From Paraphysomonas bandaiensis (lineage: Eukaryota > Protista > Chrysophyceae), in NCBI GenBank assembly GCA_965644295.1, contig CBFFRP010000348.1, forward strand, positions 198,477 through 262,476: a DNA stretch of 64,000 bases. The letters are read 5' to 3'. Positions 4,716 through 64,000 of the stretch are shown piece by piece. The notes beneath the pieces are model-generated. The model ran no database searches. It was not told the DNA's origin and was given only the letters and a program-made list of their open reading frames with translations. A program made the position numbers and the translations under genes. Position 1 is the stretch's first letter; the number at the start of each line of letters is the position of its first letter.

Positions 4716-5205
4716 CCTTCAACAACGTCGGACTCGCACCTTATTGTGGGCTTCTGGGGCATAACTATCGGGGATATTTCTCTGGGAAGCTAACGTGAGC
4801 CGCATATATAGTCAGCAGATATTGTTTTGCCCACTTATATAGCCAAATATCTGTGTTGTACAAGGGACACTTATTAGTGTCACTTGTGTAGACATCTTTT
4901 TTGGCCTTGAATAAACAGGCATCCGGAAATGGGCCCACCTTAAGGGCACACGGGGTATTGAGCTGTCTGTTGAAGTCAAGCATCCGGGCTGTTCACCTTA
5001 AGGACTCAAAAATCCTGAAGTCAGTAGATGTCAGGTATATCATGCTCACTGTGTTAAATTTTGCTTTGAGTGATAGAGCGAAAGTGGTTGCACCTTGGTG
5101 CTTACGGTGACGCGCAAGCAGCTTTCGTAGCGTTAAATAGTAGAATATCAGAGATAAGCATTGACTCTTAATAAATGGCTATTGCTAATAATAAGGAATT
5201 TACTA
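4716..5205 (+). mobile_element. SINE-like structured dispersed repeat, copy A
   Basis: Alignable by eye to 33907-34375, to the reverse complement of 32920-33360, and to 43120-43275. The 3' part (5080-5150) matches the LINE tail at 42803-42870. Confidence 0.75.
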
Positions 5206-5225
5206 CTAATCAACTTTGCACGATC

Positions 5226-8986: not shown

Positions 8987-9094
8987 GAGAAGAGGAGACT
9001 ATGAGCTACGAGCTATTCATGGCTTCCTGGTGTGGTTAGATGCTCTTGTGACACAAACATAATTCGAAATACGAATACCCGCCAACAGACACCA

Positions 9095-9444
9095 CATACA
9101 TACATACATACATACATACATACATACATACATACATACATACATACATACATACATACATACATACATACATACATACATACATACATACATACATACA
9201 TACATACATACATACATACATACATACATACATACATACATACATACATACATACATACATACATACATACATACATACATACATACATACATACATACA
9301 TACATACATACATACATACATACATACATACATACATACATACATACATACATACATACATACATACATACATACATACATACATACATACATACATACA
9401 TACATACATACATACATACATACATACATACATACATACATACA

Positions 9445-9474
<30 letters not shown>
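9095..9474. repeat. (CATA)n microsatellite, about 95 perfect units
   Basis: Directly visible; lies in the divergent spacer between the RAD54B-like and TMEM242-like genes. Confidence 0.98.
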
Positions 9475-9478
<4 letters not shown>

Positions 9479-9652
9479 CATATACAGCAGAGTACCTGCC
9501 ACTCATCGCATGAAGGTTGGTGTGTACTTATGTCCAATCCATTGTATAGCTCTGGGGTTCCTAGGAGTCCCTCTCATATACCAGTTGGATCATATAATAA
9601 CATCATTTAATATCCGAACAGCATTTAGGTGCTCAGTACTGGTTGTGTATAT

Positions 9653-10575: not shown

Positions 10576-11424
10576 GGGATATATTATTCAACCTAGTCAA
10601 TTTGGTGGAATTTCCTAGTCATTCCATTTTCGGTGTAAAAACCTAGTCAAAGCCATAAATGACTCAACCTAGCCAATTATAGTATTAAACCTAGTCGTTC
10701 TTACATCCATTGATTACACATTGCGACTGTCTAAGATACGCGCACACACCACACAACATATTGATGGCTCGTAGAGCATCACAACAAACATAACAATTCA
10801 TTCATATCTACATAAATATCTACTTAACAGTGTATGTGTATGTATATGCAGCATATCTGTATAGCTTATTAGTGTACGATGGGTCTCTTATCAGTGTTAT
10901 GAGGAAGAGGAGTGGTCAGTGTAGCTGTGCTGTGGACATACCCCCATGAATATACGTCGACAGAAACCTGGAGATCTTCATACGCTATGAGTGAGATCGC
11001 TTACCTTCCTTCAGCGACTTGCTTGTTGAGCGACTGTTTTGACTTCCAGGAGGGCATGAATACCCCATGTTTCTAGACCGATTAAGAAAAAAGAGGGGTT
11101 TTCATGTCAAAGTCTGTGTATACAAGAGCGAGAAAGGTTTTCGATGGCAGCGTCGGTTCTCTGATGCCCCTGATGAGATATTTGTCCATCCTAAGATACG
11201 ATGCTGAAATATATGATGCACATTGAATATTGCATGCATGCAATATTTGCTAGAGTATGCTCCCACGTTTGACTAGGTGAATACCCTATTCCACCTAGTC
11301 ATTGTAAAGTTAAAAATCTAATTATTTAATGACTAGGTTTTTCAACCTTTTGACTAGGTTTTTCAACCAATTTTGGTGTGACTAGGAAATTCCACCAAAT
11401 TGACTAGGTCGAAAAATAGATCCC
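10576..11424. mobile_element. Non-autonomous Mutator-like (MULE) DNA transposon, 849 bp
   Basis: 46-bp TIRs (10576-10621 and 11379-11424, 3 mismatches) starting GGG. Perfect 10-bp TSD TACAACATAC (10566-10575 and 11425-11434). Subterminal ACCTAGTCA repeats are inverted between the two ends. Confidence 0.88.
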
Positions 11425-32919: not shown

Positions 32920-33360
32920 ATTTTAAAGCCCTGTTTACTGAGGGCGTCAATATGAAGCGATAGCGGAATGTTAGATGAAAACAAAGGAAAATTAAAAAAT
33001 TGTGTTGTGTGCGTATAGGCATGCTAGTCAAAACTAACTGGCTGTGCGTCACCGCATGCACCATTTGGGCAAACACTTTCGCTCTATGTCCTTAAGATGA
33101 ACAGGCCGGATGCTTGACTCAGCAGTTCTGCAGGCAGCCCGCTGCCTTTTTGTCAGGGCCTAAGACGTCTGCACAACTACACAAGTGACATTAATTAGAG
33201 TGTCCCTTGTACCACACACGCATTTTTTGGCTATGAGTGGGCAGAGCAGTATCTGCTGACTATATATGCGGCTCCCGTTACGAAGTTTCCCAAAGAAATC
33301 TCTCCGGCACTCATTCCCCAGAAGATTACGACAAGGAGCGAGTCCGGTTTTGTTGAGGGT
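32920..33360 (-). mobile_element. SINE-like structured dispersed repeat, copy C
   Basis: The reverse complement of 33220-33360 is 140/141 identical to 33907-34047. The tail hairpin TGCG-GTGA-CGCA is at 33045-33056. Confidence 0.75.
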
Positions 33361-33906: not shown

Positions 33907-34375
33907 ACCCTCAACAAAACCGGACTCGCTCCTTGTCGTAATCTTTTGGGGAATGAGTGCCGGAGAGATTTCTTTGGGAAACTTCGTAACGGGAGCCGCA
34001 TATATAGTCAGCAGATACTGCTCTGCCCACTCATAGCCAAAAAATGCTTGTGTCACTTGTGTAGTTGTGTAGACGTCTTTGAACCTTGACGAATAAACAG
34101 ACATCCGGGGTATTTTGGGCTGCCTGCTGAAGTCAAGCATCAGGGGTGTTCACCTTAAGTTAGCAGATTTCAGTCTTTTATCAACATTCTGCTTGCTCAC
34201 TGCGTTTTTGCTTTGAGTGATAGAGCAAAAGTGGTGGCACCAATGGTGCTTGCGGTGATGCACAAGCGCAAAATAGTAGGATATCAGAGTTAAGCGCTCT
34301 AGTTATAGTGAAATTGCTTTGCTACATTAGTTATGACTCTTTCTTACGCGCCTATAGCTAATAATCCGACATTTA
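33907..34375 (+). mobile_element. SINE-like structured dispersed repeat, copy B
   Basis: Colinear with copy A. Tail GTGGTGGCACCAATGGTGCTTGCGGTGATGCACAAGC..AAATAGTAGGATAT..CGCCTATAGCTAATAAT matches the LINE 3' tail. Confidence 0.75.
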
Positions 34376-34850
34376 CCACATAACGGGAATTTGCATCAGA
34401 ACAGAAGCAGTCAGTATAAACATTTCCATAGAAATATCACGTCAACAGGACTTTTTAGGAGTATTTAAAGGTTGTATATTAGAAGTTAGAAGTATATATT
34501 TAATATTGGCAGAAGAGTTTGAGTGAGTATGTCATTTGCGTAGTAGTTTTCTGCATTTTTTTGTCAAACCGTATCTAGGAATATCAAAATCAACACAGTA
34601 AAATTAATTGACATTCATTCTATATTTTTTGATATTTCTCAATTAGATGGAGGCTACTTAGCGGTTATTTACCTGCAACTAATTGGAAGTTTTCCTGTTT
34701 TCTTCCAATTCGATCATTGCATATAGTTGGGAAGTTCATCGTCTCACACAGCCTCGTGCACATTGTGATTAAAAATAATGAAGAAAAAATGAATTCTCTT
34801 CGAAAATAGAGTAAAGTTGAAATGTTAATCCTTAATACATGTTCTACGTT

Positions 34851-41055: not shown

Positions 41056-42985
41056 GATACCTACCAAGCAATCTTTACAGACGGATCATACACGCCTGCA
41101 GCCCTCTCCCCGCGCCGCATCACACATGTGCCCTCACGTCTAAGATGGACACATCATGGAGGAGCGGCGGTTGTCTGGCTACCCCCTGAGGACGAATGGC
41201 AGACCGGCACTACAAAAATCCTGCGCTTAGAGACACCCTTCAGCGATGTACCTGGACTTGGACCGTATGCGTACGAGCTTATGGGCGCTGCAATGGCACT
41301 AATACTATCGGCGCGGATCCATGCACATGTGCCGATTAACACAGACTGTCGTCTGCATCCGCGCGGAAGAGGCACTTTCCACCAGACGACGAGCCCTAGG
41401 CCATCGTGCCAAGGGAGTCCTGCTCGAAAGCATTGCAGCAACCACAGATTGCACTAGGAAAGTAGCATGGGTTCGATCACACCCGGAAAGACGCGACCAC
41501 CACCGACGAATCTGAATGGACATATGAAGACAAAGGTATATACCTTGCAGACGCAATAGCTGGAGAAGACTGGCTTGAGGTTGATCGTCTACTGGGCAGA
41601 CAAAACTACACTGTTTGTAACATAGAAGTAGACCAAGCCATCGAGCGAATACTCACCGCGGGCTTATGGCACTGGCGCATTTCGGGGGAACGACGGCTAT
41701 TTCGTACGAGCCCCCTGCTAACAGACTTCCAGTCCCTCCGCAGACAACGGACGCTGGAGTTCTACACTGCATACAGAGATCAACACTACGGTCACAATCC
41801 CGACAGGGCACCCAGATACTGGACAGACAGTGGGGCAAGCAGGTGGTGGTCCAACAAAGGAAAAAGATAGCTCCCACCTACGCCAACGAGTGCTCAATGC
41901 AGCAGTGACATGGGACAAATTCTTCAGCATAGGTCGAAACCGGGCTAAAACTAAACACGGACTAGACCTGACCAAAGCCGTCTGTTTTGACTGTGGATTT
42001 AGATTGGACTCCCTCAAGCACATGTGCCTAGACTGCACATATGACGCCATCACTCAAATAAGGGAATCGGCATTTCACAACCACAAAAACGCGCTTCAAG
42101 AGGTACTGAGAAATTCGGTCTTCAAGAGACTCTCCAACCGGGCCTGGAACCCTTCCGTGCCACAGGTGGAAAGATTATGGACAGGTACCATCACCACTGC
42201 ACAACTAGAGACGATTTTTGGAGATCACATCCATCAGCCCTTGACAACCCAAGGTCTGCGCAATCTCGAAACAGCGGTCATCAGCTTGCTTCAACCGCTT
42301 TACGACGCCGCTAAATTAATGATTCAGGACCGAAGTCGACGATACATTACCTCACACAAAGGACCCCCTAGGTTACTCCCGCGACCGCGCCCGCAACACA
42401 AACGGAAATGGAAACGCCCAAGGGTGCTACGATTACTAGGAGTCCAAAGACGACCAGAGACGGGACTACCATCCACTGCAACCACATGCACCACCTCTCA
42501 TGCACGCAGGAATAAAGCACCGGACTGCTTGAAAACATCTGGTCCTCGACAAAGACGCCGTCTCCGGCAACTACACCTATGCCTGATGCCCAAGCGATGC
42601 AAGGAAACAACGACACCCTCCACCACTCCACTCCCCTCACAGAACACACATCTAGTGCTCGGTACACTCAGGACCTTAATACAGAACCCGGTACCTCAGA
42701 GCCAGGCGGAACCGTATCCCAAGGGGAGACCCCCGGACAACACGCGCCAGTGAGTCCTCAGACACACGAGCAGGGCGAACTCACACACAACATCAAGAAC
42801 GGAAGTGGTTGCACCTTGGTGCTTGCGGCGACGCACAAGCAGCTTCTGTAGCGTTAAATAGTAGGATAATAGAATTTGTGCTGATTAGTTATGGGTAGAG
42901 GCTTACTAGTAGACTAGTATTCAACTAGCCGCTATATCGGAACGAGTTTTTAACGCCTATTGCTAAGTAAAAAGACATTCAATAT
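41056..42985 (+). mobile_element. 5'-truncated, frameshifted non-LTR retrotransposon (RNase H + C-terminal Zn knuckle + 3' tail)
   Basis: RNase H motifs across frames: IFTDGSY, GGAAVV, AYELMG, INTDC, WVRSHPERR, WTYEDKGIYLADAIA. Zn knuckle CFDCGFRLDSLKHMCLDC. GC-richer than flanks and intronless; no RT in the retained part. Confidence 0.75.
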
Positions 42986-43119
42986 AATATAGAGGGAAAA
43001 TATAAAATATATATATTAGAGTCTGGTAAAGGTATAAGAATAGCTTAAGTGTGAACTAGATTTTGATTAAAAATTACATCTTCATGAAAATTTTAATTGC
43101 GAATAGTAAGACATTTCTT

Positions 43120-43275
43120 TTATCTAACGTGAGCCACTTTTGTAGGCAGCAGGTATTTTTCTGCCCATTCACAGCCTTATGCTTGTGTGATGCAAAGGGC
43201 ACAACACTCTAAAGTAAGCAGATGTCAAGTCTATATATTAACATTCTGCTTGCTGCGTGATTACTTGGAGTGATT
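43120..43275 (+). repeat. Degenerate internal fragment of the SINE-like repeat, copy D
   Basis: CTAACGTGAGCCAC..GCAGCAGGTATTTTTCTGCCCATTCACAGCC..ATGCTTGTGT..AAGCAGATGTC..AACATTCTGCTTGC..GAGTGAT aligns with copies A and B. Confidence 0.65.
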
Positions 43276-43819
43276 AATGATAAATTAAATTCACACCATT
43301 CGGCATCTGTGTGGCCAACAAAAAGGCAATGCGTGAAGTGAACCTCACATGCATCACAATGACAATGCAATCATATCTGCAATGTATTGCTACGCGAGTT
43401 CTGCCTAGTCTTGTTTTTCCTCAATATAAGGTCATTGAGATCACTATGACAACGCTCTGACACTGTTTTCCAAGTAGTAGTGTCTGGTACATTTTAGCTT
43501 TGGTGTTTTCTATTGCTTTGTGGCCTGAACCGGCTCTTGATCTCGATATCCTCAGACCAAACAATTAATGTTGATATAAAGAAATAGTAAATATAATCCA
43601 ATATAAATATACCAAAAGCCTATGACTTCGTAATGATCATCCCAATTAGTTTGTCAATTAATTCACAAACTTTAGAAGATAGCGCAGTTGTATTAGATTG
43701 TGATACAGATAGTGTCAATTTAGAAGGCGATGACGTGAGTTAGCAGCATTTGAGGACGATCTGACGCTCTGTACACCAGGCGCCAATCTTAGAAATCTTG
43801 AAATTTTGTCGCGTCTTGG

Positions 43820-49017: not shown

Positions 49018-49792
49018 TTTCTCTATTCATTACAGTAACTAAACCAGCATTTCGTTTAATCTGTTTTCTCTGTTCTCTGTGTTTTTACCGTTGTACGTTG
49101 TACACAACTAGCGTGGTCTGTAGTTTTAATAGCAAACGGTGTAGCTTGCCGCAGTTTGACAAGTCCATTTTACCCCTGCTCAATATTTTGTATAAGTACA
49201 GTTGAAAGTATCAGGGCTAGTTGCCGTAAACGAAATTTGCAATAAAGTTATTAAGCATGTAGCTTTATATATATGAGCTGCCAACATGTCTAGTTTTAGG
49301 TTTTAGCTGTTGCTTCACTATCATTTCGTTCCAGAGGCGACGATTTATGCGTAAAAACACAAGCAGCTCTTGCGTAATTTAGTCATAACAATCGAATAGT
49401 TTGTTCTACTGAATAATCTTTCAACCTTATTGGTTGTGGCTTGTGGCATACAAGTGCTTCGTGCTGCTTTTAACTTTTAAGGCTTGCTTGCTTTTTCATG
49501 CTGTCCCAACTTCAATTATTGCAAAGCCAATAGTTGACAAGTAATTGCATATAATTGTTGCGCATCCCCGGAAAGTATACTGCACACTGTTCTATAGAAG
49601 TTAATCTATAGATTAAAATTTCAAATTAGAAGTTAAAATAGAACTAACTCTTATATATCTACTTGGTGTTTTCTTGAACTCGTAGTTGCTTGTACTTCTT
49701 TAACAAAGCCATATTCTACAGAAGTGTATACACTAGGCACTTGATTACATGCTCCTTGAAATGATTAAACGAGCACAATTATATATATTAAA

Positions 49793-49860
49793 TTCAACTA
49801 GCCACTACATTGGTGCCGATGTTTAACGCCTATTGCTAAATAATAAGACTTTCAATTCAT
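49793..49860 (+). repeat. Isolated extreme 3' tail of the LINE/SINE family
   Basis: TTCAACTAGCCACTACATTGG..TTTAACGCCTATTGCTAAATAATAAGACTTTCAAT matches 42920-42983 TTCAACTAGCCGCTATATCGG..TTTAACGCCTATTGCTAAGTAAAAAGACATTCAAT. Confidence 0.75.
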
Positions 49861-50606
49861 ATAGTACATGATACTGAAATTGCAACTTTCTATTATAGGA
49901 AGTACAAGTGCATTTCACAGAGTAATTTCACTAGATGAAGCAAACTTATATTGCATTCGAAACGTAACGTTGATCTCCTCTATTTATCTATCTGCGTTGC
50001 TATGTTACCATAGAATTTCATCTACTCAAACTAAGGCATTTCCATTTACTACAAAGAACAATAACGCTGTGGATGTGCAACTCACATAATATTAGATTCT
50101 ATGTTTTGGCTTTCAGAAATAGAACCATATTTTTTTACTGATGATTTCCCCTGTCACAAGAGAGTTATTATTCACCGATTCCTCATGCTTATAAGCAGTT
50201 GCACGATCGTCTAACACGCCACCCACCGTCTATCTGGTATAGCAGACTAGAGTGGGAAGAAATGCAGTGTGCAGGTGACGCCATGACGTATCCTGTACTG
50301 GGAAACTAGGAATCCACTAATGCGGAGGACATGATCTGATGATGCCTGCTGATCATCAAGATACAGGCCAAGGAGCGGATCTGTGGTATACATTGCGTAT
50401 ATAGACTGTATACCTGGAGTTGGTATCCGATATACGGTAGAGTATTCATCGTATACCAGTATGTGCTGTATACCAGTGGTATAGAACTATACCGTATACG
50501 GGTCAGAAGAGACCACTGAAAGGGGCCGGAACAGGTGCGTCCATGACAGCACTTCCATGAGGCACTGTGGGTCATACACAGCAGACTATCGGCTCCACGA
50601 AGTGCG

Positions 50607-56262: not shown

Positions 56263-57460
56263 AAGTGTTGCTTGTGTTGTCGTTTAGTTGTATGATACGG
56301 AAATTGGAACGGATACTTCTCATATGTTTACCCCTATGGTAGAATCCGTGTTGGAAAACGTAATATATTGTAACACAGTTATGCACTCAAGTGATATTCA
56401 CTTCATAAAGATAATACGCTGGTATAGAAAGTACGTATTCATTTGTTGACAAAATAGATATTGAACTAGGAGGTGTGGGGTAGGGACTCTTCCCCAAGGT
56501 TACTGGTTTGCTCCTAACTGGTCAAACTTCGGAAGGTGTTTACATTCCGAACTACTTGCGGAACAACTATCTGCTACGCTGTAATTTGACATCATATGAG
56601 AAGTATTAACTTAACAACGGAAGGTAAACTTATACCCAATGCTAAGAATTATAATTGTAATCAATATCTCTTATCATTTATCAATTCATGTTGTCTCTCC
56701 TCTCTATTCACTCCTCTCTACTACCACATACTACATACCACACATTTCTTGTACGATCTTACTTCGTCACTACAATCCTCATCGTCATTATATTCCACTT
56801 TACTAGATATACATATCGTCATTAATTCTCACAGTACGATTAATAAGAGTACAACTGTATATTACTGTAATTTAAATACCTTACAATTACAATTGCTCTC
56901 ATCTCTCATATATAGCAGATAGTAGAACTCAACAAATTCACGACTCAGGTTTGCATGTAGAGCAAGGCTATTAACTTCAGTGTTCAGTGTAATATCAATG
57001 CAAATTTAAGCTTAGTGATAGTAAGAAGAATTTTGCGATTCTTAGAGCGTAAAGTGATGAACACAGTAATGTTGAAAAGTGAATAATAATGTAGAACATC
57101 ACACACAACGAAATAGTTAGAAGTATAACTGACAATGACGATCGTTATGATGGCGATCAAGTATCTTCAACAGATAGAATCATTAATTCAGTTCATGATA
57201 TATTTCATTGAACATTACATTTCACATATTCTATCATATATTAAGATGAATCCTAATAATATCCAAATCTAACGTAGTATATGTAGTATAAGACATAAAA
57301 CTATAATTAATTTTGATTTCATTGCGGTAATGAAATACATTAGATCCGATAATGCAAGATACAACATGCGCACCAGTACGAAGTATGACGACGAACAATT
57401 TAATTAAACTAATTCAATATAGCACTCTATACACTGAACATGAAAAATAAGTTGTGTAAA

Positions 57461-61948: not shown

Positions 61949-64000
61949 CTACTCGTTCCCAACGATCAGACATATCAAATGACGAAACAATTTTCCTTGT
62001 AGGGGTTTAGTCAGCACATCAGCCAACATCTCTCCTGTAGGTAAGTACTGAAGCTTCACGTCTCCCCTATCATGGTGTTCTTCGACTAAAGCCTGCCTTA
62101 CTCGTAGATATTTCGATCGGTATTTGCCTCCTCCTTTCGTTACGAGACTGAGATTCGACAAGTTGTCCTGATAAATAACAGGTGGGTCAAGCGCATAGCC
62201 CTGCCCACACACAAACTCATGTAATCTCATTGCATTAGACATCATATCAGATAGGCCGACCAGCTCGGATTCGGTCGAGTCTTTCGTCACGATTCGTTGC
62301 TTAGTTGATCGGCATAGTACTGTGGCCCCTCCAAGCTGTACAACTACGCCTGTATGCCCTTTTCCGTCTTCGTGGGTGGCGAACGAAGCGTCGATGAAGC
62401 TTCTTACCCGCAGCTGCTCTCCAATCTTCAGCTGCAGATCTTGATCCCTTGTGTGCGCAAGGTATTTCAGCACTCGATTCAACTTCTGCTGATCTCCGAT
62501 TGTCGGACCCTTCACTCTTGTTGTGAGGTACGCTATACTGAGCAGGATGTCTGGTCTAACTCTTATTGACAGATATAGCAATTTGGCCACCACTGAATGG
62601 AAATTGGCAGCCTCCTTCCTCCCCAATTTCTGTCCTGCGCCCTCTGCGAACAGTGATGATGTCGCTGGAGATGCTGCTCTGCCAGTGACCGCTGCCTCCT
62701 CCAGCACTCCGTCTAGGTAAGCCCTCATTGACACCACTGCCCTGTCATCTATCATGCTCACATGCATACCTAAATACGACATGTCTTTGTCATCACAGTA
62801 TTTTACCTCACCATATTGTTTCTTTAGTTGTTCCACCAACCACTCGGTGTCACGCTTGTCTTGTGATAGCACTAGCAGATCGTCCACGTGTAGTGTTATA
62901 GTGCACTGCTTGCCGTTGACAGTCCTATTGAGAACACACTGATCCACCGGGTTAGCCACGAAACCAATGCTTTCTAGGTAAGCTCTTATCGTGTTGTACC
63001 AGAGCTTGGCGCTCTGCACGCATCCATATAACGCTTTGTCTAGGCGCACCAATATTTTGCCTCTTTCATCAACATACGGCTGGATTGTGGGGTCTAGTTT
63101 TCTGAGTATTGTGGCCAACATCGGCTCCAATTCCATTATTACCTCTTCGCCTGACATCTCCGCATTGAGGTATGCACCACCTATATCAATTGTCGATACA
63201 TGTCTCCCCTCTCTCGCTGCTATTGCTAGGCATGCAAATACTGACTGTATGTCCACAGTGGGTGACGACGTGTCTGGGTACAGTTTCCGGTCCTGCTGCG
63301 CCCCGTTCGCAACCAGCCTCGCCTTGATTTTCTCGAACCTTCCGAGTCCGTCGTATTTCGTCTTCAAGAACATCAGCGATCGAATTGTTCGTTTGAGTTG
63401 AGTCTTTGACAGGTCACTCCGGTGTACTGGAACTATCGCCTTTTTTTCATGCAGCAGCTGCTTCAGCTCCCGTACTATCGCCAGGTAGGCTTCTTTGCCG
63501 TGTTCCTTTAAACCTTTGGTTACGCTTGTGTGATAGGCTCGATACATTACGGGCTTTCTTCTTGTGCCTGCCGCTATCCTTGCTCCGGCTGATGGTGATG
63601 ATAGTACTTCGCTTGTATTGTGTGTCATCCCTGCAGTTTCCACCCCTGTAATTTCCGGATTGTCGATGTCGTTGGGTGTTGCAGCGCCCGGTTCCTGTTC
63701 GCTCGGCCCATCAGCCCTGTCGCCATCATCGTCGACTAGTTCCGTGATTTTTGTTCTCTCTCTCTTCTGTGTGGGCGTGCACTTCGTCTGTGTCAACTGC
63801 TGTCATCTGCCCCTCCTCGTGAGGCTCCTTCGGCTTATCGATCTTGTCATTCTCAGCTGGTGGCGTGGTATCCTCGATCTCTCGACTCTCATTCTCACTG
63901 GTCGTGACAGGTGAGTGTGACTTGTTGTGCAATGACGATATTCTATGTCCACGGCGTCGATTACTATTTGCGTGGTCACCATCTTCACCCAGTTGGTCCT
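61949..64000 (-). mobile_element. Ty1/copia LTR retrotransposon pol (RT + RNase H), runs off the window; ORF interrupted upstream
   Basis: KIKARLVANG, DIGGAYLNA, LDKALYGCVQSAKLWY, LHVDDLL, YLGM; RNase H FIDASFA, STESELVG, YQDN, LADVLTKPL. In-frame TGA at 63803-63805. Confidence 0.95.

Follow-up and report, generated by a model that had tools for sequence, protein, structure and literature searches.

A dispersed non-coding retroposon family that shares its 3' tail with a SET-domain LINE and carries a candidate HDV-like ribozyme at its head

The window, by which is meant the whole 64,000-nt stretch of DNA that was analysed, contains one complete copy of a non-coding retroposon, two older copies of a divergent subfamily, a fragment of a longer sibling and sequence from the LINE whose 3' end the retroposon shares (Table 1). 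The initial annotation had described a repeat of ~450–490 nt with three long copies and one common start, and this holds, as all three begin CCyTCAACAA..CGGACTCGC at the same nucleotide. It had also listed a partial copy at 43120–43275. This stretch is indeed homologous, but it belongs to the 1.19-kb sibling, here called type C, and extends to ~43494. The two older copies lie head-to-head, 546 nt apart, and their first 147 nt (33214–33360 and 33907–34053) are 99% complementary while the remainder is far more diverged, which suggests local gene conversion or a partial inverted duplication. Elsewhere in the window, an ORF on the minus strand (61949–63796) encodes a Ty1/copia-type reverse transcriptase (RVT_2, 1.8e-27), and positions 8991–9600 are occupied by a long, near-perfect tandem array of an 8-nt unit (~80 registers of a 202-nt block), which yields spurious ORFs on both strands. 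A TCP-1 gene lies in the neighbourhood.

Table 1. Retroposon and LINE features in the window
Feature	Position	Strand	Identity or basis
Complete type-A retroposon, 491 nt (copy 1)	4716..5206	+	86% to consensus, aligned over positions 1–497
Copy 1, head module: candidate HDV-like (Pr77-type) ribozyme, with decay mutations	4716..4801	+	consensus fold
Copy 1, tail block 1: stem with two hairpins, one with a GNRA loop; homologue of the LINE 3' UTR	5075..5155	+	87–89% to 42796–42876
Copy 1, tail block 2: terminal motif (..GCTATTGCTAATAATAAG.A.TT.ACTAC), the 3' end of the element	5171..5206	+	alignment
Old fragmented copy of a divergent subfamily, 3' part decayed	about 33043..33359	-	first 147 nt 99% to the neighbouring inverted copy
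Old complete copy of the same divergent subfamily, ending ..GCCTATAGCTAATAATCCGACATTTACCAC	33908..34379	+	74% to consensus
5'-truncated partner LINE: RNase H motif, CCHC region, 3' UTR	41056..42986	+	81% to the young subfamily, 92% to another
LINE 3' UTR stem-loop block in common with the retroposons	42796..42876	+	alignment, fold
LINE terminal motif (..GCCTATTGCTAAGTAAAAAGACATTCAAT) in common with the retroposons	42948..42986	+	alignment
Old type-C (1.19-kb sibling) fragment, just downstream of the LINE end and in the same orientation	43124..43494	+	71–81% identity
Solo 72-nt LINE tail, a LINE copy with extreme 5' truncation	49792..49863	+	83% identity

The copies in the window are members of a large family. 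A 21-nt word from the head was matched 1311 times (685 + 626) at up to two mismatches in the 62.6-Mb genome of 669 contigs, and the reversed control of this word had no match in the same genome. Within the window, a 25-mer from the head has three matches versus none in 100 shuffles. Both ends of the retroposon are sharp in an alignment of 32 copies: the 5' end reads CCCTCAAC... (also given as CCCTCAACAAAGTCGGACTCGCACC) and the 3' end reads ...GACATTCACTAC (also given as ..GCCTATTGCTAATAATAAGACATTCACTAC), and poly(A) is absent. The consensus measures 497 nt, and individual copies are 84–92% identical to it. Target site duplications (TSDs) of 9–14 nt abut both ends in six of 20 complete copies, compared with 0% for flank pairs that were shuffled between loci. 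TSDs were also recognised by eye at loci L030, L061 and L062, those at L008, L061 and L062 are 12–14 bp long, and the duplicated sequences are AT-rich and non-specific. This is a real family of dispersed, non-coding retroposons with common termini and TSDs. With 1311 heads of 0.5–1.2 kb each, it would account for ~1% of the genome, and it is an abundant retroposon to be included in the transposable element annotation of this uncharacterised marine eukaryote. In the public sequencing runs, which bear coded names, the element is present in both organism A and organism C.

The last ~135 nt of the retroposon comprise two blocks, of 81 nt and 36 nt, each of which is ~90% identical to the 3' UTR of the LINE. 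These are consensus positions 363–443 and 461–496, and the match holds for the 3' UTR at each LINE locus. The homology between the tail and the end of the non-LTR element, which had been noticed at the outset, is borne out by copy 1: block 1 aligns as listed in Table 1 and the terminal 36 nt are 89% identical to LINE positions 42948–42984. The LINE has ~70 extra nt between the two blocks relative to the retroposon. Upstream of the tail, the body has no similarity to the 7.07 kb assembled LINE reference, in agreement with the earlier remark that the bodies are unrelated to the LINE.

The 81-nt block folds into a stem bearing two hairpins, one of which has a GCGA/GUGA loop. In the basal stem, LINE and retroposon subfamilies differ by compensatory changes, with pair 7/53 being GC in 11 cases, AU in 11 and GU in 5, and pair 9/51 being AU in 24 and GC in 3. 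This covariation involves two basal-stem pairs (14 cells) and a value as high was reached in none of 500 shuffles. The inner hairpins are invariant and so are uninformative for covariation.

The retroposon occurs in three structural types: type A of ~0.5 kb, type B of ~0.49 kb and type C of 1.19 kb. Type B consists of body positions 1–293 joined to the final 197 nt of the LINE, its whole 3' UTR, and one type-B copy has a perfect 14-bp TSD. Type C, for which L061:501-1690 serves as the reference, was found by a search with a consensus-like copy: nt 1–370 are 98% alike and the sequence beyond is different. At least 40 copies of type C are 98–100% identical, two young copies are flanked by TSDs of 12–13 bp, and the type looks currently active; two young loci run to contig ends. 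Within the type-C element sequence there is no significant similarity to LINE proteins (best E 0.42). The tail of type C is reduced to two pieces, a 21-nt core of the GNRA hairpin and the terminal motif, with ~10 nt between them, which suggests that these two are the pieces needed by the reverse transcriptase (RT). The tails of types A, B and C form a natural deletion series for mapping recognition by a stringent LINE RT.

The partner LINE encodes an AP endonuclease (APE) and an RT, together with a SET domain (Pfam PF00856, 1.2e-9). This SET methyltransferase-like domain is in frame and directly upstream of the AP endonuclease (L052:829-1500; G000:C146), and in L052 the LINE sequence extends further 5' of it. 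Downstream, an RNase H-like motif (TDGS..E..TDC..SH..AD) and a CCHC region were recognised by inspection only, with no match to RNase H in Pfam or PDB sequence searches. The copy in the window begins exactly at the RNase H motif (AIFTDGSYTP). Copies of the LINE are 99–100% identical and their 5' truncation is variable. A word-level search gave seven relatives, and those with names are APE/RT/RNase H elements. A literature search found no paper on SET/OTU LINEs. A related LINE that is 39% identical, found in a metagenome contig from JGI, has the same ..AGATATTCAAC motif at its end, so the motif is conserved across species; a SET-bearing gene also lies upstream of the RT gene in the related LINE of JGI contig L064. 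As a separate observation, the related metagenomic LINE (L064:12130-12177 and L065) ends ..CCAGATATTCAAC and is then followed by A9, a short A run that is lacking in the elements of this genome. At another locus, direct repeats of 1188 bp, 100% identical to each other, flank a 5'-truncated LINE (L047, G000:C394, 5657-6844; L050, C394:78759-79946), the first immediately upstream of it and the second beginning at its 3' end. These repeats could be an unusually long target duplication or an assembly artefact, or the LINE could have inserted into a tandem repeat.

In stringent LINE–SINE pairs, such as UnaSINE1/UnaL2 and the SINEs with CR1-, L2- or RTE-type tails, the SINE tail is copied from the 3' UTR of the partner LINE and includes a conserved stem-loop that is recognised by the RT, independently of poly(A). 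The SINEs in these pairs have Pol III heads derived from tRNA, 5S or 7SL. The family described here has the same kind of LINE-copied 3' tail, but no recognisable head of that kind. Types A, B and C make up one non-autonomous family, which is probably copied in trans by the RT of the SET/APE/RT/RNase H LINE via a specific 3' module. Mobilisation by this LINE family had been proposed in the initial annotation, and the sharp ends, TSDs, copy number, tail blocks, type B and tail covariation all support it, the trans step itself being deduced from shared sequence only. Here, the LINE RT would recognise a 3' module made up of the covarying stem with its GNRA hairpin and the terminal ..AGAYNTTCAMY motif, in a manner resembling that of the stringent pairs. 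Insertion would take place by endonuclease nicking and target-primed reverse transcription, a route proposed to account for the 9–14-bp TSDs and the lack of poly(A). The strategy itself, that of the non-autonomous, LINE-tailed retroposon, is known, and the family adds a new example.

The repeat might have been no retroposon partner of this LINE at all and instead the 3' UTR of some other LINE, a DNA transposon or MITE, or a sequence whose tail is a host target. These possibilities, which the initial annotation had raised against its own proposal, were considered and rejected, and the chance that any of them is correct is minimal. The TSDs directly flank the head and the terminus of the tail. 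LINE coding sequence is found within 1.5 kb at only one of 30 loci, where it is part of a separate neighbouring LINE fragment, and the body is therefore not another LINE's 3' UTR. There are no terminal inverted repeats: when the head is compared with the reverse-complemented tail, 8 of 40 positions are identical and the best local score is 4. Since the TSDs enclose the tail, it is not a host target sequence, and it covaries with the LINE tail. A different objection accepts the LINE-derived tail and concerns transcription: the element could be a classical SINE, with a new kind of internal Pol III promoter in its head and a Pol III transcript that is reverse-transcribed by the LINE. The length of ~0.5 kb, high copy number, non-coding nature and LINE-derived tail agree with this, and the repeat had at first been called a SINE. 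However, the first 200 nt have no B box within two mismatches, the A-box matches are only loose and lie beyond nt 120, and the Rfam search found no tRNA, 5S, 7SL or snRNA similarity, in line with the earlier statement that no tRNA A/B boxes or 5S/7SL similarity are seen at the head. A TTTT run is present inside the head at nt 26–29 in all types, and the active type-C sibling has six such runs in its 1.19 kb. In addition, long contigs of the element are present in poly(A)-selected marine metatranscriptomes; being assembled contigs, they show presence in RNA libraries and not RNA ends, and the high depth over the element with zero depth over the flanks in poly(A) libraries is expected of any repeat. 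The absence of a B box, the TTTT runs, the 1.19-kb size and the poly(A)-selected contigs argue against Pol III, and a Pol III promoter in the head is improbable; in that sense the term SINE was not upheld.

The remaining alternative concerns the origin of the head and body. In L1Tc/NARTc, ingi/RIME and the R2 SIDEs, the non-autonomous element and the LINE have a common head (PMC3383444, PMC3414825), and types A, B and C could likewise be internal-deletion derivatives of their LINE. If so, nt 1–370 would be the LINE's own 5' UTR and the LINE would start CCCTCAACAAAGTCGG; the elements would still be non-autonomous and mobilised by the LINE, without an independent 'SINE' head. This is compatible with the known LINE sequence, which stops short of the 5' terminus (L052 and L053 remain identical all the way to their edges), with the fact that all LINE matches in the genome begin at query position 1, and with the complete LINE 3' UTR contained in type B. 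Against it, the 7.07 kb LINE reference lacks any similarity to the body, and a LINE variant in ENA contig L063 has, ahead of the LINE sequence in common, a 5' leader of at least 374 nt (called ATG at 319) that is unrelated to the body. Furthermore, among the head-word matches listed, none lies upstream of copies of a related LINE family on contigs C20, C80 and C89, which is weak evidence. From the sequences compared, the evidence leans weakly against a 5' end shared by LINE and retroposon, and derivation by internal deletion is somewhat unlikely.

The initial annotation thought that the head may be of a new type. Instead, nt 1–86 are predicted to fit a known architecture, that of an HDV-like self-cleaving ribozyme of the L1Tc/Pr77 type starting at nt 1, and this candidate assignment is held with moderate confidence. 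A descriptor of the nested double pseudoknot (P1-P2-P3-P1'-P4-P2') has a single solution, which is anchored at nt 1 of the element. The helices in the consensus would be P1 at 1–6/40–45, P2 at 15–22/80–86, P3 at 23–25/33–35 and P4 at 53–59/64–70. The J4/2 motif is GAAACUAA and includes C75-U-A-A (C-N-R-A type), which is almost invariant between copies; no part of the head is better conserved than the J4/2 stretch. Only 5 of 20,000 dinucleotide shuffles meet the descriptor, which is loose, was shaped on this sequence and passes 429 of 624,432 genomic positions (~7 per 10,000).

The minimum free energy structure contains P1 and P4, the centroid contains a helix that overlaps P3 (21–25/33–37), and the thermodynamic z-score of the head is unremarkable at −0.76. 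The fold is irregular: P1 needs a 4-nt J3/1 or a bulge, P2 is bulged, the P1.1 pairing is weak and J4/2 exceeds that of HDV in length. Rfam returned nothing for head or tail, both at gathering thresholds on the whole window and at permissive E-values (E up to 1–10) on the copies. Covariation in the head fold was equal to that of shuffled data in 28 copies, a test of low power because the copies all descend, with decay, from what is essentially a single head sequence. Many copies have CCGG changed to CCAG or CTGG at the same CpG sites of the P4 hairpin (CCGG..CCGG). This looks like CpG decay, which mimics compensatory change, and hints that the repeats are cytosine-methylated.

The NARTc/L1Tc, RIME/ingi and SIDER elements of trypanosomatids bear the Pr77 hallmark with its HDV-like ribozyme (PMC3185411, PMC4035085). 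Active Pr77 ribozymes have P3 ACC/GGT, L3 TCATTGT or TCATCGT, and J4/2 GAAGCTAA or GAGGCTAA (PMC4035085 supplement); the Pr77 sequences used here were taken from that supplement and primers from PMC3185411 and PMC4748587. The corresponding motifs of the head, namely P3 ACC/GGT, a 7-nt L3 of TTTTCGT and J4/2 GAAACTAA, match those of the active ribozymes. A collinear global alignment of the head to T. brucei Pr77 was bettered by 16 of 3000 shuffles, and the alignment to T. vivax Pr77 was not significant. The head's near-invariant 18-mer had 0 matches in metagenome contigs, a set that may lack records close to this genome, and a literature search for HDV-like ribozymes in diatoms found no paper. 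If active, the head would cut exactly at nt 1 and so free the RNA of the element from Pol II read-through or from its own transcripts. Such cleavage is proposed to account for a 5' end that does not vary, with no need of a Pol III promoter.

The trypanosomatid elements are also the closest parallel in overall design. NARTc, RIME and SIDER are likewise short, non-coding retroposons that depend on an APE/RT/RNase H LINE, and their first ~77–94 nt form an HDV-like ribozyme that cuts at nt +1. In these ribozymes P1 starts CCC/CCU, P3 is ACC/GGU, L3 has 7 nt and ends in GU (UCGU or UUGU), and J4/2 is GARRCUAA, all features to which the head can be likened. However, the trypanosomatid elements have a 5' end in common with their LINE and a poly(A) at the 3' end, whereas the elements here finish in a specific stem-loop and terminal motif and lack poly(A). 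The present family also differs in having a SET-domain partner LINE, a marine, non-kinetoplastid host, and a head that is a candidate ribozyme by fold and motifs. The R2 SIDEs of Drosophila (PMC3414825) are similar in being non-autonomous, in combining a 5' HDV-like ribozyme with a LINE 3' UTR bound specifically by the RT, as is proposed for the present family, and in having no Pol III promoter. In contrast to the present family, which is dispersed in more than 1300 copies with AT-rich, non-specific TSDs, they are internal R2 deletions inserted site-specifically in 28S rDNA and co-transcribed with rRNA. In ribozyme-bearing retroposons of Schistosoma (PMC8501958), self-cleaving RNA sets the ends of non-LTR/SINE-like transcripts, but the ribozymes are of the twister-variant and hammerhead classes.

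If the head does cleave, ribozyme-headed, promoter-less retroposons would extend beyond trypanosomatids, insects and flatworms, here in a family linked to an unusual SET-domain LINE. A bolder proposal is that the head works as an HDV-like ribozyme and shares true homology with the trypanosomatid Pr77 hallmark, rather than resembling it by convergence, and that it is carried by a retroposon, and perhaps by the SET-domain LINE, of an unrelated marine protist. This is a speculative idea, to which a fairly low probability is given. Were it true, Pr77-type heads would be a module of RNase H-bearing LINEs that is either ancient or spread horizontally, and comparison of types A, B and C would show the minimal 3' signal of the RT to be the GNRA hairpin core plus the terminal motif.

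Two further repeats were noted that are separate from this family. One is a dispersed repeat of 78–85% identity, unrelated to the retroposon, which occurs at window positions 57018–57260, at L061:1806-2059 and at L054:703-905, and in L054 it sits just upstream of the start of LINE similarity. The other is a 76-nt inverted repeat pair in the window (10576–10651 and 11349–11424), whose members are 86% complementary and 697 nt apart and are possibly the ends of a small DNA transposon.
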